Of a stretch of 64,000 nucleotides of DNA, positions 21,996-58,898 are shown in pieces. Position 1 is the stretch's first letter. Each line of letters starts with the position of its first letter. The translations under genes and the position numbers were made by a program. The notes beneath the pieces were generated by a model. That model did not search any database. It was not told where the DNA came from and saw only the letters and a program-made list of their open reading frames with translations. The DNA lies in IMG/VR virus record IMGVR_UViG_3300028735_000003, positions 248,001 through 312,000 of that record, one strand, 5' to 3'.

Positions 21996-23240
21996 TCAAT
22001 TCTCTGGATCTTCATCCAAATCTATAAGACCCTGATCATACAGGTGATCCTCAAGTATCTCCATTAAATTGTCAATCTTATCTGGGCTTCTATCTACATT
22101 TTCTGTTTTAACTTTAGATTCCTTTAGATTTACTTTCTTTGCTTTCAAGTCAGCAGGAAGAGATGGTATCATCGAAATATTAAACAAATTATCTAAAATC
22201 ACGCCAACATTGTCATCATAATCGTTTGTACTGCCAGAAAAATGCAACGCCAACCCCACATCGAACACAGCTCTACTATGTATTTGTTTCAATCTTTCTT
22301 GTACCATTTGCCATCTGTCAGGGAATATAGTACAAGAACACTGATCTCCGTGCATATCTTCTATCACAGCCTTAATCATTGATTGACCATAGTATCTGCT
22401 TGTCTCTTTCTTTACTTTAAACTCGAAAAAATCTTTAACAATTGCAATCATTGATTGGATCGAGGTTTTATTCTTAGATTTTCTAATCTCTTTAATAGCT
22501 GTATGCTCTTTATCGAAGAATTTTCCATGTGCTTGATATGGCTTGCACACAAAAGATTCACCAAGATAGAACTGTTCTAAAGCATATAATTCAGATACTC
22601 CCCATTCAGCATCGTTTGGCCAAGGATATATAAATTCTTCTTTTGTCGGATCATGCTTCTTACACCATACTTGTAATTTCTTTCTATAATCAGAACAATA
22701 CAGATAAATCAATTTTCTTGGAATTTTGAATTCATCTAAACAGCCACTTGCTGCCAAAGCTTGAATATTGTTGGCACGTACCTTCTTAGAATCTACTCTG
22801 ACCATAAAATCAAAAAAATTCTTAAATGGTCTCTTTGCAATTATCTCTTTTATTGCATCTTCTCCAACAAATTTCAAAGCATCTAAACCAGTGATTAACT
22901 TATTATCATCGCCTATCGTATAAGTAAGTTGTGATGTATTAATATTTGGTGCTACTATTTTTACATTATGATCTCTGATTTCTTTCTTAATCTTTTCTAT
23001 ATTACTCTTGGCATCTTGGGCGTTTGAATTAACTTCAAACATTAGATTTGCCAATAAAAATTCTATCGGATAATGCGCTTTTAGATAAGCAGTCTGATAC
23101 CCAACCATGGAATATAATGTGGCGTGAGAATTAGATGTTAATACTCCATTTGATAAATAAAATTGATGATCTAAATGATCCACTTCTAAATCATAAGTCT
23201 GAAGATCTCCAATATATTTAACAGATTTTATATTCCCCAT
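21996..23240 (-). CDS. dnaE: DNA polymerase III alpha, C-terminal part, preceded by split-intein C fragment
   Basis: After IntC reads SHATLYSMVGYQTAYLKAHYPIEF, then LITGLDALKFVG (HhH) and an OB-fold region. GGAGA RBS before ATG 23240. Confidence 0.93.
   Translation of the reverse strand: MGNIKSVKYIGDLQTYDLEVDHLDHQFYLSNGVLTSNSHATLYSMVGYQTAYLKAHYPIEFLLANLMFEVNSNAQDAKSNIEKIKKEIRDHNVKIVAPNINTSQLTYTIGDDNKLITGLDALKFVGEDAIKEIIAKRPFKNFFDFMVRVDSKKVRANNIQALAASGCLDEFKIPRKLIYLYCSDYRKKLQVWCKKHDPTKEEFIYPWPNDAEWGVSELYALEQFYLGESFVCKPYQAHGKFFDKEHTAIKEIRKSKNKTSIQSMIAIVKDFFEFKVKKETSRYYGQSMIKAVIEDMHGDQCSCTIFPDRWQMVQERLKQIHSRAVFDVGLALHFSGSTNDYDDNVGVILDNLFNISMIPSLPADLKAKKVNLKESKVKTENVDRSPDKIDNLMEILEDHLYDQGLIDLDEDPEN
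23130..23240 (-). other. Split intein C fragment (37 aa)
   Basis: MGNIKSVKYIGDLQTYDLEVDHLDHQFYLSNGVLTSN|S; blocks F and G, terminal Asn, Ser+1. Confidence 0.92.
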
Positions 23241-23351
23241 ATGCTTCTCCAATTTTATATTCCTGGTATTTTTTATCTAAAATATCTAACAACTTATTTA
23301 AATATTATTTCTAAATTATCAGTTTAATATGATCAATTATAATATCTAATT

Positions 23352-26057
23352 TTATCGATTTAAATGTTCCACAGCATCAACAATAATGGTTAATTTTTCA
23401 TTTATTATCTTCCACAATGGAAGCATCTCCCCACTTTCCTCTACACGAAATTTATGGTTAATTGTACATTTAACTTTTTCTCCAGTTACTAACTCTATTT
23501 CAACTAACGGCAATATTCCATGATCATATTTATTTGTTACTTCAACAAAAATATCTTTTTTAGTCTTTTCATCTCTAGATCTAATATACTCTCCAGGGAC
23601 AACATCACATATCATCTTTTGGTATAAAAATTTACCATCTGAAGTATATATGTCAATTTTTTCTAAAGCTGACAAACATAAATTGAAACCATATCCACCA
23701 AATTTTTCTATAGTTTCATCCCAAATTCTTTTGGCTATTTCTTCATTAATACCATTCTTAATAGCACCTTCAATAAATTCTATTCTCCACTTCTTCGCCT
23801 TTTCAGGATCCTTGCCCTTCGCTTTTGTAAGCTTTCTAAGACGATCAGCTTCATGCAATGACCATCCAGCAACATCTTGTGCCAAATACATTAAGCACTC
23901 TTCATATAAACCAAAACCATATGTATTACCGAATCCTCTCTTAAGGGCTGGATGTAATAATGTGATTGGTTTTTTACCATCTCTAGTTAGAATGAAATCG
24001 TCTCTCATATCTCGTGCCGATGGTCTAGCCAATGCGTTAATATTTGATATATCATTGATATTACATGGCTTAATTCTCCTACACAGATCTGTGGTGCCTC
24101 CACTAGTTCCTAGTTGGAATACGCGCAACGTATCTCCAGATGATATTAAATCATAGGTTTCTTTGTCATATTCATCATAATTTAACGGATCTGGCGGGGG
24201 TTGTTTTCCAGCCTGTATAATAAGTTCGGTTGTCTTGCTAATAATATCTAGAGTAGATAGACCTAACATATCCATCTTTACAAGACCATTATCCTCAGCC
24301 TTTTCTTTATCGTACTCAATGGCTAAGGCTCCATCTTTATCTTTTCTAAGAGGGACCAATCCAGTTAGGGGTCTTTGAGATATAATAATGCCACCAGCGT
24401 GAGTAGACCATGCACGATACTTACCACAAATATCCTTATACTTTAAGAATTCAGGATATTTCTTGCAATATTCTGCAAATAAAGGTACCTTTACTAGAGC
24501 ATCATCAATACTGTGAATATCAGCAGGTATACAATCTGCAACATCATTTCCGATCTTTATGGCTGCCTCTCTTGACCCGCCAAGCTCGCATGCTCTGGCA
24601 ATATCCCTAACAAATACTTTCGGAGTAATTGTATTAACATTAGATACATGCGCGACATGGTCTTCACCATATTTTAGCTTAAGGTATTCTTGTACCCTTG
24701 CCCTGCCAGACGGAGCGAAATCTGTGTCAATATCAGGAAAGCTAGACTTTTCCTTATTATGGAATCTTGCAAAAATCAAATTATATTTTATTGGATCTGC
24801 TTGGTGAATATTTAGCAAATAGGCGACCAATGAGCCACCCACAGATCCACGACCTGCTCCTACAGCAACCCCATTATTTCTTGACCAATTTATATAGTCT
24901 GCTACGATTAGCATATAGCTAGAAAACCCATGAAATTCTAATACATCGAGTTCTTCGGCTATACGGTCTTTATATTCTTGTATTTTATCTTCATCTATAT
25001 CTTTAAGTCTTATGCTAAAATTCTTATCACACTTAAATCTCAAATACCTCTTATCTTCATCTAGACTTTGAACAATATCAGGCTGTGTTGCGCTCCAACT
25101 AATAAACTCAGAATAATCACCCTCATCCTTAACTGGAAATATTGGTAATTCCTTTCCAGACGGATTAGAAAACTTAGGATCTATCCAATTAGGATACTCA
25201 CACATTTGAGAAAAATAAATGCTATTAGAACATAATTCCTCAGCAAGTGCATCTCCATAATTTCTGCTAAAGAAAGACTTTACTTCATCTCCAGATTTAA
25301 GATAAAAATCAGGAACAGTATATCTTAGTCTATAATTAGAATACACTGACTGATGAGATCCTATAGATAATAGCACATCGTGTGTCTCATGATCTTCTTT
25401 ATTCACATAATGTGAATTACAAGCTGCCACAACGCGCACACCATGCTTTTTACCTAACTCTATCATCCTGTGATTTATGAATTTTTGATCAATCTCATCG
25501 TTGAATATATTTGAACCTCGCTTCATATTATTTGGTTGAACTTCTAACCCAAGGTTATCACCAAATAATTCTTTAAGCCTAATTATGGTATTTTCTGCCT
25601 CATCTATCTTACCATTCATTAAAAGCTGGCTTACAATACCATTACCACACGCAGTTAAGCAAATCAAACCATTAGCATATTCATTCAACATATTCCAATC
25701 AATTATGGAATATACCCTCTTTCCAATCAAAGAGTTTTGATCGAAACCTTTTTTATTTAGGGTTAAAAGATTTTTATACCCCTCAGCATTTTTCGCTAAT
25801 AGAATAATGTGCCGTAATCGATCTGATGGTTTAGTAATATCGTCTTGAAAATATAATTCGCATCCTATTATAAGCTTAACTCCTGTTTCTTTTGATATCT
25901 TCAAAGCGTCCCAGGCGCCAGCTAAAGATCCGTGATCAGTAATAGCTATCGCTGTTTGACCTAACTCTTTTGCTTTTTTGAATAATCCCCTTACAGAGGA
26001 CAGTGAATCTAATATAGAAAAATCTGTTTGATTGTGTAATGATACGAAATCAATCAT
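23352..26057 (-). CDS. dnaE: DNA polymerase III alpha, N-terminal part, ending in split-intein N fragment
   Basis: PHP domain (SLHNQTDFS, AITDHG), GRGSVGG, FPDIDTDF, STHAGG, KMDMLGL; ends GGYGFNL|CLS. Start revised to MIDFVSLH. Confidence 0.95.
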   Translation of the reverse strand: MIDFVSLHNQTDFSILDSLSSVRGLFKKAKELGQTAIAITDHGSLAGAWDALKISKETGVKLIIGCELYFQDDITKPSDRLRHIILLAKNAEGYKNLLTLNKKGFDQNSLIGKRVYSIIDWNMLNEYANGLICLTACGNGIVSQLLMNGKIDEAENTIIRLKELFGDNLGLEVQPNNMKRGSNIFNDEIDQKFINHRMIELGKKHGVRVVAACNSHYVNKEDHETHDVLLSIGSHQSVYSNYRLRYTVPDFYLKSGDEVKSFFSRNYGDALAEELCSNSIYFSQMCEYPNWIDPKFSNPSGKELPIFPVKDEGDYSEFISWSATQPDIVQSLDEDKRYLRFKCDKNFSIRLKDIDEDKIQEYKDRIAEELDVLEFHGFSSYMLIVADYINWSRNNGVAVGAGRGSVGGSLVAYLLNIHQADPIKYNLIFARFHNKEKSSFPDIDTDFAPSGRARVQEYLKLKYGEDHVAHVSNVNTITPKVFVRDIARACELGGSREAAIKIGNDVADCIPADIHSIDDALVKVPLFAEYCKKYPEFLKYKDICGKYRAWSTHAGGIIISQRPLTGLVPLRKDKDGALAIEYDKEKAEDNGLVKMDMLGLSTLDIISKTTELIIQAGKQPPPDPLNYDEYDKETYDLISSGDTLRVFQLGTSGGTTDLCRRIKPCNINDISNINALARPSARDMRDDFILTRDGKKPITLLHPALKRGFGNTYGFGLYEECLMYLAQDVAGWSLHEADRLRKLTKAKGKDPEKAKKWRIEFIEGAIKNGINEEIAKRIWDETIEKFGGYGFNLCLSALEKIDIYTSDGKFLYQKMICDVVPGEYIRSRDEKTKKDIFVEVTNKYDHGILPLVEIELVTGEKVKCTINHKFRVEESGEMLPLWKIINEKLTIIVDAVEHLNR
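23355..23678 (-). other. Split intein N fragment (108 aa)
   Basis: CLSALEKIDI...block B VKCTINHKF...EMLPLWKII, then stop. Confidence 0.92.
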
Positions 26058-26182
26058 ATAGCTTCCATTACTTGATAAGTACTTTAACAAATACACATCT
26101 CACTTATTAGAAAGCAATTTTAACCTAATGTATAGGTTACGTGTGTTTTGTCAGGGAATACGGTACATTTATAGTTATATAG

Positions 26183-26863
26183 TTATAATAACTTACGTCT
26201 TATTAAGATAGATCGTAATTCTTTTTCGTCAAGAACTTTGTAATTTTCATAAATATTATCAATTATTTTAAATTGATCTTTCCAAAATTTCTTATCATCA
26301 TTATTGATTAATAGTGATTTAATATCAGAATAATACAGCCGTTTCTTTTGAAATAAACCATGAGCAATAATACTTACTGAATTCCAATTATCTTGTAATT
26401 CTTTCAATGTATTACTTATAAGTTTCTTTTTTAATTTATATCTTTGCTTACCTGGAGTAGCAAGTTTATATTTTTTGATTAATTTAGCAGCATTTTTAGT
26501 ATCATCAGACGATCCATCTTTTAGAAATATTGGTAACGTATCGGAACCAGATATTGTTTTGAAATGGAATTTTTCGGCTGTTAAACCAGCATATATTAAA
26601 CAAATTTCTGATTTGACGATATAAGTTAGCAAATCATTAGATTGCACATCGCTTGCTGTCAAAAAATCGAAATGGGTGAACCCACTTACTTTATTTTTTC
26701 CAAAAGGCATAACTTGTACAGACTCTATCCTAGCCAAATGTAGCAAACCATATATTGTATGACCAGCTTCGTGATAAGACGTAGATATCAAATTATGAAT
26801 AAATGCTACATTATTGTTAGCGACATTTTTGGAAATACTTATAGAGTCTATACAACATACCAT
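26183..26863 (-). CDS. Stand-alone peptidase M41 (FtsH-like) zinc protease domain
   Basis: SYHEAGH (HExxH), YAGLTAE, GSSDD. Confidence 0.75.
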   Translation of the reverse strand: MVCCIDSISISKNVANNNVAFIHNLISTSYHEAGHTIYGLLHLARIESVQVMPFGKNKVSGFTHFDFLTASDVQSNDLLTYIVKSEICLIYAGLTAEKFHFKTISGSDTLPIFLKDGSSDDTKNAAKLIKKYKLATPGKQRYKLKKKLISNTLKELQDNWNSVSIIAHGLFQKKRLYYSDIKSLLINNDDKKFWKDQFKIIDNIYENYKVLDEKELRSILIRRKLL

Positions 26864-27478: not shown

Positions 27479-28726
27479 TTATTCTACAAACTTAACGGTT
27501 TTTACTATGAAATCTAATGTATTTTCATCTCTGATTCTTGAGAATAAGATTTGTAAATATCCTGTTCTATTCATTTCTTGAATAATATCGTCTGGAGTAG
27601 ACTTTGTCTGAGATTGCAAAATATTATGTTTGATTATATCAAACACTTCCTGATCTGATAATTGAGCCTCTGGTTCAACTTCACGAATCCTGTCCAATAT
27701 AAGCGAGAGTTTTACATTATTCTCTGCCATCTCCATAAACTTCCTTCTATCTAAATCCGTTAAATTATCCCACTCCAATTTAGATTGATGCGCCAAGTAT
27801 CTTGCTTCTGATAGAAGCAACCAATTTGGAACTTCAAATTTATGATTTGCTACTAGAAATTTAGATACAACTTCATTAAGTTGCGTTTTAATAGCAATAG
27901 CCATTTTGGCTGCGGCTGATTGCGAAACAAATTCTTTTAGTTCGGCAAAACTGCTTTTACCTACCTTCAATGCCAATTCATCATTTAATGGCATTGGATT
28001 ATTTTTCGCCCCCATATTTAATGTTACTGAGAAATGAATTGTCTTTCCTACCAGAGATGGTAGCCCACCTTCTGGTACAACCAAGTTAAACTCTCTAGTT
28101 TCACCTATAGTCATGCCAAGCAAATTGTCATCAAACGCCGTCAATTGACTATGACCAACTGTAAGCATTTCTCCTTCCGCAGATAGACTATCAACCTTTT
28201 GCCCGTCTATGGAACCAATATAACTGATAATTACATTATCACCCTTCTGAACAAAATCAGTCTCTTCATATGGAAGAGAAGTACCGAATCTAACACGCAA
28301 TTCTTGAAGCATCTTCTCGGCAAGTTCTGCAGAAGTTATTGCTTCATGAGGTTTTGGCAGTTCGAAATCTTTATACGTAGTTAATTCAAAATCTGGCTTT
28401 ACAGCGAGATCAAAATCACACATAAACTTACCATCAGCCATTAACAATGAATTGAATCTTGGCGCTCCATGTGGGCGCAACTTCTTTTCGAATAGAGTAT
28501 TGTGATAAGCATCTTCTGCTAAGCCGCGCTTTAAAGATTCTTCTATTTGGTTTCTATAATACATCTTTATTGCATCTATAGTTGCCCTTCCCTTTCTAAA
28601 ACCTGGAACTGGAGCTTTCCTAAAAGCTTTCAAGACTTCTACCCTCTTATTGAGAATTTCTTCAGCATCAGCTATATAATGAACAGATAACTTACACGGC
28701 TCTATTTCTTTTATTTCAATATCCAT
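27479..28726 (-). CDS. tig: Trigger factor
   Basis: Ribosome-binding signature VPGFRKGR; FKBP-like GDNVIISYIGSIDG...LLGMTIGETREF; helical C domain. Confidence 0.9.
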   Translation of the reverse strand: MDIEIKEIEPCKLSVHYIADAEEILNKRVEVLKAFRKAPVPGFRKGRATIDAIKMYYRNQIEESLKRGLAEDAYHNTLFEKKLRPHGAPRFNSLLMADGKFMCDFDLAVKPDFELTTYKDFELPKPHEAITSAELAEKMLQELRVRFGTSLPYEETDFVQKGDNVIISYIGSIDGQKVDSLSAEGEMLTVGHSQLTAFDDNLLGMTIGETREFNLVVPEGGLPSLVGKTIHFSVTLNMGAKNNPMPLNDELALKVGKSSFAELKEFVSQSAAAKMAIAIKTQLNEVVSKFLVANHKFEVPNWLLLSEARYLAHQSKLEWDNLTDLDRRKFMEMAENNVKLSLILDRIREVEPEAQLSDQEVFDIIKHNILQSQTKSTPDDIIQEMNRTGYLQILFSRIRDENTLDFIVKTVKFVE

Positions 28727-56226: not shown

Positions 56227-56251
56227 GATATACAATATAACATGTCTTTTG

Positions 56252-56323
56252 CATCCCTAGCAGGACTCGAACCTGCATATATCAGTTTAGGAAACTGACG
56301 CCTCTCCTTTAGGCTATAGGGAC
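56252..56323 (-). tRNA. tRNA-Arg(CCU), CCA not encoded
   Basis: Acceptor GTCCCTA/TAGGGAT (G1:U72), D stem GCCT/AGGC, anticodon arm TCAGT-TTCCTAA-ACTGA, T arm GCAGG-TTCGAGT-CCTGC. Confidence 0.92.
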
Positions 56324-58536: not shown

Positions 58537-58898
58537 TGGTGGAGGATCGGGGGATCGAACCCCGGTCTTGAATACTTCGCGATTAAACTCATTCACAAAC
58601 TTAGTTGATGTTTATCTGTCATCAGCACCAGTGAAAGAATTCGCTCTAACTGGCTAGTTACTGTTCATTTCGAATGTTAAATCCGTAACCGACAAAACAT
58701 TCTATCCTTAGTGTGTTGAGCATTCATCAGATACCAAGAATATCTCTCCTAGAACACTCCAATTAAGCAGCTTGTGCCATTGGAACAAATGCATTGTCGT
58801 TTGCATTTATACGTTGATTGCTTTTTAACGAGTCCCTGCAATCATCCCCGGTTTGCATTTAAATCGCTATTTACCCAATCGAAACCAAATTATCCCCC
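58537..58898 (-). ncRNA. ssrA: tmRNA; tag peptide (A)ANDNAFVPMAQAA
   Basis: 5' GGGGGAT pairs with ATCCTCC-ACCA (G3:U70); T arm GGTTCGATCCC; resume context ATAAAT-GCA AAC GAC; tag ends GCT GCT TAA. Confidence 0.95.

Follow-up and report, generated by a model that had tools for sequence, protein, structure and literature searches.

A probable fractured-gene-derived split intein in the DnaE polymerase of a large phage contig

Inteins that are split by nature tend to show higher activity than artificially split ones. Cyanobacteria carry a naturally split intein in DnaE, the alpha subunit of DNA polymerase III, at the site EY/CFNKSH with Cys+1 (a slash marks the insertion point throughout), and the split inteins gp41-1, NrdJ-1 and IMPDH-1 use the nucleophile pair Cys1/Ser+1. 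The closest phage-like systems were described as 'fractured genes' by Dassa, London, Stoddard and Pietrokovski (2009, Nucleic Acids Research; PMC2677866), who reported three DnaE loci off the cyanobacterial site (DnaE-1, DnaE-2 and DnaE-3), for DnaE-2 a Vsr-like enzyme of at least 315 amino acids (aa), and a further locus without an endonuclease, gp41-7, whose state was read as endonuclease loss (step III of their model). Novikova et al. 2016 (PMC4760082) placed an insertion hot spot in the finger domain of PolIII-alpha, where a stretch of 75 residues contains sites a-d and g, site a being the split cyanobacterial one, and in a 2025 survey (bioRxiv 10.1101/2025.01.02.630785) Pol III alpha is listed among the new intein host proteins of actinobacteriophages. 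Natural Ser1/Ser+1 split inteins have been called rare and sought after, and only PolB examples are listed (PMC11923092, PMC12707363). Our literature search returned nothing specific on inteins of huge or jumbo phages, on mycobacteriophage DnaE inteins or on InBase-style site names DnaE-a to -d. In this study, we analyzed a stretch of 64,000 nucleotides (nt), hereafter the window, from the 353,765-bp phage contig IMG/VR UViG_3300028735_000003 (= Ga0272446_1000003), in which the polymerase is encoded by two genes, dnaE-N and dnaE-C, each joining one part of the enzyme (the N- or C-extein) to one half of an intein (IntN or IntC). It is very likely that the DnaE of the window is rejoined by trans-splicing of a naturally split class-1 intein that arose from a fractured gene and has since lost its endonuclease.

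All coordinates of the locus are window positions, and both genes lie on the minus strand (Table 1). Upon re-reading, the anatomy given in the original prediction, with IntN, stop codon, 111-nt spacer, GGAGA ribosome-binding site, IntC and SHATLY following each other, proved correct to the base; a second possible start for dnaE-N is a GTG at 26096. The N-half matches the Pfam families PF02811, PF07733 and PF17657. Against the PHROG DNA-polymerase profile phrog_405 the N-half covers positions 42-792 and the C-half positions 793-1063; because the exteins abut exactly on this profile, the arrangement is not due to chance. The motifs of a class-1 intein are in place, namely the nucleophile C1, block B (T72-x-x-H75), block F (D17 and H25) and N37 followed by S+1, with D17 and H25 aligned to the Npu residues in YDIGV...DHNF. 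IntC reads MGNIKSV...DLEVDHLDHQFYLSNGVLTSN and continues into the C-extein as SHATLYS. The insertion point falls in the finger-domain motif GYGFNx/SH[AS], here FNL/SHA, and splicing of the 901-aa and 414-aa precursors is predicted to give a product of 1170 aa carrying GYGFNLSHATLY across the junction. The reading as a class-1 intein that is split by nature and sits in the DnaE of a phage is supported.

A protein search with the C-half, clustered at 90% identity, listed 120 clusters, and among these matches at least 88 are C-halves of about 410 aa that start with Met and the same IntC, on contigs of up to 486 kb. L34, S36, N37, S+1 and H+2 are invariant in 88 clusters, over which identity to the window is 78% for IntC and 61% for the C-extein. 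A search with the IntN region gave about 45 N-halves of approximately 900 aa that stop shortly past IntN, and of the 54 N-half clusters with a parsed junction, 47 end in this way. Identity to the window is here 65% for IntN and 67% for the N-extein, with a nonsynonymous divergence (dN) of about 0.15-0.26 and saturated synonymous divergence (dS). Both intein halves and the exteins are under purifying selection. A nucleophile occupies the first intein residue in every case (Ser in 50 clusters, Cys in 7 and Thr in 2), and the block B His and the block F Asp and His are conserved across the family. The invariance of S36, N37 and S+1 in at least 88 C-half clusters argues for functional trans-splicing, and trans-splicing, as first proposed, would still be the best reading of the invariant N37 and of the nucleophile kept at residue 1 throughout the family.

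Several observations weigh against this interpretation. The invariance of S+1 is not independent evidence of splicing, because the DnaE motif alone accounts for it. Pfam found no intein domain in the whole halves; with IntN alone the Intein_splicing model scored 18.3 bits against a cut-off of 35.8, and IntC alone gave no match. Similarity to solved inteins is weak, the best E value being 1e-5 and reached only with a profile: a profile of five IntN sequences found the Npu/Ssp and consensus DnaE intein structures at E = 1e-5 to 5e-5, and phmmer with IntC found Npu IntC (4lx3_B) at E = 0.0037. Lastly, the window is the only family member that joins Cys1 with His53, for which a recent switch or a one-base sequencing error is possible.

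Two other explanations bear on the same residues. Split-intein halves bind tightly to each other ahead of splicing, and the sequence gives no proof of catalysis, so the halves might never splice and IntN/IntC might serve as a tight non-covalent dimerization module, or the two chains might act as separate subunits, leaving a two-chain polymerase; a two-ORF (open reading frame) DnaE without room for an intein is in fact found in Rossellomorea phage phiT1. We consider this very unlikely, since an invariant Asn37 in 88 clusters, a residue 1 that is always Cys, Ser or Thr, and conserved block B and block F residues would be needless for binding only, an unspliced domain of 145 aa would interrupt the most conserved finger-domain motif, and the contiguous versions described below must splice in cis to give a normal enzyme backbone. 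A decaying pseudogene, with a dead intein or polymerase and a phage that uses the host replisome, would agree with the decayed endonuclease and with the homing-cycle model, in which inteins are lost in the end. This is highly improbable given that neither ORF is disrupted and no catalytic residue is missing, that purifying selection acts on the exteins as well as on the two halves of the intein, and that the gene lies within an intact replication module (UvsX-like, SbcCD-like, exonuclease, topoisomerase IA and dNMP kinase genes).

The break itself might be an artefact of assembly or sequencing: stop and spacer would then be errors, and the true genome would carry either an uninterrupted gene or a contiguous mini-intein. 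The window does come from a metagenome assembly, and contiguous variants are known among its relatives. This explanation is extremely improbable: a spacer of 111 nt is not a one-base matter and is homologous to the remnant of an endonuclease gene (see below), an independent 6.5-kb contig (P0001) carries a C-half 99% identical to that of the window with the same Met start, and the layout of stop, spacer, ribosome-binding site and ATG is repeated in many independent assemblies with spacers of 35 to 2332 nt. Because the architecture recurs in this way, the split is not an assembly artefact.

The history of the fractured gene can be traced in the spacers of the relatives. Spacers of 918-1196 nt hold one ORF of approximately 305-311 aa (L005, L035, L063, L076 and L089); the spacer is 2332 nt in L051, 257 nt with a recognizable C-terminal fragment of the endonuclease ORF in L037, 117 nt in L041 and L115, 111 nt in the window and 35 nt in L052 and L068. 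The ORFs are free-standing (L005:5070-6011 and L035:5085-6005), and their 3' end overlaps the IntC start codon. They belong to a family of 265 representative clusters with an invariant N-terminal C-x2-C...H...H finger of the Ros/MucR type (Pfam in 20 of 42 members; PDB 2jsp, E = 9e-6) and a C-terminal E-x-D-G-x2-H...D...R region matching DUF559 in 9 of the 42. A PDB profile search with this family returned the Ros zinc finger only, and neither Vsr nor I-Bth0305I. As judged from these motifs, the ORF of about 305 aa would be in keeping with the free-standing, Vsr-like enzymes reported by Dassa et al. 2009 (PMC2677866).

The last ~90 of the 111 spacer nt of the window align with the 3' end of this ORF. 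Local alignments against the endonuclease 3' ends of L005, L063 and L089 gave z = 5.6-6.8, a score reached by none of 500 shuffles, and the GGAGA ribosome-binding site matches the former ...K-I-G-E-A codons. On this evidence, these ~90 nt are what is left, in decayed form, of the 3' end of a free-standing gene for a homing endonuclease. Because the spacer is a remnant of a gene intact in the five loci with full-length ORFs, the window matches the endonuclease-less derivative and not the full fractured arrangement. The original prediction had described adjacent halves without an endonuclease; indeed no endonuclease gene lies between the two halves, but this is a derived state.

Contiguous inteins complete the series (L050, L086, L111/L112 and seven protein clusters of 845-1398 aa). 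In these loci and in the seven clusters (P0145, P0149, P0153, P0156, P0168, P0173 and P0174) IntN, a short linker and IntC are in one ORF, and in some contiguous versions the former IntC initiator Met is still in frame, as in P0145 (...ITMTNIKS), which points to split inteins that were fused again once the endonuclease had been lost, and not to ancestral mini-inteins. A separate case is P0006 (511 aa, on a 1.9-kb ENA contig), a single ORF with an odd N-terminus, the distal IntN, an in-frame linker ..ILKLEKYIGNIES.., IntC and the C-extein; Ile replaces the IntC initiator Met, and either re-fusion of the allele or chimerism of the short assembly would explain this ORF.

A metagenome search for the same insertion site, suggested along with the original prediction, recovered split, contiguous and empty alleles. 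Among 119 related loci drawn from IMG/VR and JGI metagenomes, 88 have no intein and an uninterrupted GYGFNxSH[AS]. One empty-site allele, P0331, is an intein-less DnaE of 1178 aa (= 793 + 385), which shares 95-96% identity with the exteins of P0123/P0330, a split pair. On the C-extein tree, intein presence is no more clustered than shuffled labels and requires 15 changes or more, 9 of them forced by well-supported branches; recombination can blur such a tree, and full-length proteins without an intein are under-sampled owing to the length filter applied in the search. This scatter is consistent with an intein that was gained and lost repeatedly, as is typical where homing is followed by loss. 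In GenBank, a homologous C-half (CAB4197062.1, uncultured Caudovirales phage) is labelled 'Intein C-terminal splicing region' and adjoins the N-half CAB4197060.1; blastn of the window locus against the phage collection gave no match. Phage phiT1 (L042, PV767480.1, gp20/gp19/gp18) was considered as a cultured example and rejected, as its break is elsewhere and leaves no room for an intein; in its annotation, ORFs of 574 and 470 aa make up DnaE and are separated by an ORF of 50 aa, as the result of either a frameshift or another kind of split.

A second, LAGLIDADG-containing intein was observed at another DnaE site in N-halves of 1280-1367 aa (P0131, P0140, P0142, P0165, P0166, P0169 and P0170; L005:1222-5064). 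In P0166 the sequence is ...VVHN/SVGGSLVGYLL, inside the GRGSVGGSLVAYLL motif, and the window has no intein there.

Within this DnaE allele (relatives P0121-P0179, L063 and L111) IntN residue 53 covaries with intein residue 1. His53 is present in 52/52 clusters with Ser1 or Thr1 and in all Ser1/Thr1 loci, and Asn53 in 6 of the 7 Cys1 clusters as well as in L063 and L111/L112. Ser1 is encoded by AGT, TCG or TCC in the relatives and Cys1 by TGT in the window, where a single nucleotide change could plausibly have turned Ser into Cys in an intein of the Ser1 type. With its 98 columns, the IntN tree lacks the resolution needed to show the Cys1/Asn53 switches as separate events. The Ser1 (50) and Thr1 (2) clusters have Ser or Thr at both junctions, yet keep a conserved non-junction Cys directly before the block B Thr. 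Pasch et al. 2023 (PMC10189870) proposed a His (the 'NX motif') as specific to Ser1 inteins, and His53 may be its natural counterpart; compared by sequence alone, the NX His is preceded by Lys/Arg whereas His53 is preceded by Asp/Asn.

A course of events can be proposed for the fractured gene and its trans-splicing. In the ancestor, a free-standing homing-endonuclease gene would have come to lie inside the intein at the usual endonuclease position, leaving IntN and IntC on two ORFs. The gene would later have been deleted in the lineage of the window, with ~90 nt of its 3' end left and still providing the ribosome-binding site of the C-half. The spacer of the window contains neither a terminator-like site nor a significant RNA structure (fold z-score 0.09), which makes co-transcription of dnaE-N and dnaE-C likely; promoter signals in it do not exceed chance. 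The two genes would be translated separately, and the two precursors would associate through IntN and IntC. A thioester at Cys1, attack by Ser+1, cyclization of Asn37 and an O-to-N shift would then yield DnaE of ~135 kDa, and replication would presumably need this splicing.

The neighbours of dnaE are replication and recombination genes encoding a UvsX-like recombinase, SbcC/SbcD-like proteins, an exonuclease, topoisomerase IA and a dNMP kinase. Closely upstream of dnaE-N are two genes that are unusual as phage cargo, a trigger-factor homologue and a possible FtsH-like peptidase, and the window further contains a tmRNA and a tRNA (Table 1).

Table 1. Features of the split dnaE locus and other features in the window
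Feature	Position	Strand	Description
dnaE-N ORF	23352..26057	(-)	ATG 26057 to TAA 23354-23352; 901 aa = 793-aa N-extein + 108-aa IntN; first in gene order
N-extein	23679..26057	(-)	793 aa; PHP, pol3_alpha and finger domains; C-terminal end KFGGYGFNL, last codon 23681-23679
IntN	23355..23678	(-)	108 aa; begins CLSALEK; Cys1 (TGT), His53, block B T72-I-N-H75
Cys1 codon	23676-23678	(-)	TGT
His53 codon	23520-23522	(-)	context K-Y-D-H53-G
Stop of N-precursor gene	23352..23354	(-)	TAA
Spacer	23241..23351	(-)	111 nt, non-coding, between IntN stop and IntC ATG
Ribosome-binding site	23246..23250	(-)	GGAGA, 5 nt ahead of IntC ATG at 23240
dnaE-C ORF	21996..23240	(-)	414-aa C-precursor; second in gene order
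IntC	23130..23240	(-)	37 aa; MGNIKSV...D17...H25...VLTS36-N37
C-extein	21996..23129	(-)	377 aa + stop (21998-21996); begins S+1-H-A-T-L-Y; HHH_6 domain (Pfam)
Peptidase-like protein	26183-26863	(-)	226 aa; HEAGH motif, weak Peptidase_M41 (FtsH-like) match
Trigger-factor homologue	27479-28726	(-)	complete; Trigger_N, FKBP_C, Trigger_C
tRNA-Arg(CCT)	56251-56323	(-)	
tmRNA	58537-58898	(-)	full length; Rfam 117 bits, tag peptide ANDNAFVPMAQAA

A broader reading, which we put forward tentatively and regard as rather less probable than not, is that the allele GYGFNx/SH[AS] is an undescribed split-intein family that holds all stages of birth and decay (endonuclease-bearing, remnant, endonuclease-less, re-fused and empty) together with natural Ser1/Ser+1 and Thr1/Ser+1 split variants outside PolB. 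The covariation of residues 1 and 53 would then record a retuning between oxyester and thioester chemistry (Ser/Thr with His, Cys with Asn), with the window as the single Cys1 + His53 intermediate, and members of the family might become new orthogonal ligation tools. The value of the locus lies in the large natural family around it and not in a new kind of system. For phage biology, trans-splicing would often be the way in which the replicase is produced in a widespread clade of very large phages, whose contigs reach about 490 kb, and an intein/endonuclease element is seen cycling in and out of dnaE. For intein evolution, one allele offers an unusually complete series of the gene-breaking model of Dassa. 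For protein engineering, there are dozens of diverged natural pairs in an extein context, FNx/SHA, unlike that of the tools in use, and the Ser1/Ser+1 variants may be useful.

The window shares with gp41-1, NrdJ-1 and IMPDH-1, which are characterized representatives of the fractured-gene class, the Cys1/Ser+1 pair, the sizes of IntN and IntC and a phage origin, but not the host protein, and the gp41-1 structures gave no sequence match to the window halves at E <= 10. It differs by its Cys1 from the cysteine-less (oxyester) split inteins Aes123 PolB1, PolB16 and LCGC14 PolB2. The insertion site is already occupied by contiguous mini-inteins with Ser+1 in two deposited phage genomes, Rhodococcus phage NiceHouse (gp90; L001, MT521992; SFNK/CLAKD...FLTHN/SHAVAY) and the gut phage contig MT835601 (L002). 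These end in HN and CN, respectively, where the window has SN, are cis-splicing single ORFs and are distant in sequence; both are unannotated as inteins in the deposited genomes.

The Npu/Ssp DnaE inteins of cyanobacteria are the closest solved relatives of both window halves, with about 15 of 34 IntC positions identical to Npu. They occupy the same finger-domain hot spot of the same host protein and are split at the same position within the intein (102 + 36 aa there, 108 + 37 aa here). The absence of a penultimate His, which had been listed as distinguishing the window, is real but makes no difference from cyanobacteria, as the Npu/Ssp inteins share it, Npu IntC (4lx3_B/4qfq_B) likewise ending in SN (...fiasn). 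The position of the site, four residues downstream of the cyanobacterial one (FNx/SHA versus EY/CFNK), with Ser+1 instead of Cys+1, was borne out by the junction FNL/SHA. The window halves are 111 nt apart and probably co-transcribed, whereas the cyanobacterial halves are at distant loci. The cyanobacterial split is also fixed, but the allele of the window occurs sporadically, and its close relatives include alleles that are contiguous or lack the intein. Because of the downstream site, Ser+1 and the adjacent halves, the window does not hold the cyanobacterial allele.

The fractured genes of Dassa et al. 2009 resemble the window most. In both, a phage-type replication gene is divided into two adjacent ORFs on the same strand with IntN (~100 aa) and IntC (~37 aa), and the endonuclease position is the same, the relatives of the window carrying there an ORF of ~305 aa with a Vsr/DUF559-like C-terminal domain; for DnaE-1, DnaE-2 and DnaE-3 the comparison is by description and not by insertion residue. 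The split had been proposed as independent, but its kind is already represented by these three loci and by gp41-7. Unlike the short GOS fragments of that study, the window belongs to a contig of ~354 kb, from a clade with contigs of up to about 490 kb, and unlike a full fractured gene it has only the ~90-nt remnant in place of a free-standing endonuclease gene. Judged by these comparisons, the element of the window is best classed as a split intein that derives from a fractured gene and has reached the stage of endonuclease loss; it is neither an invention of its own nor a novel architecture.

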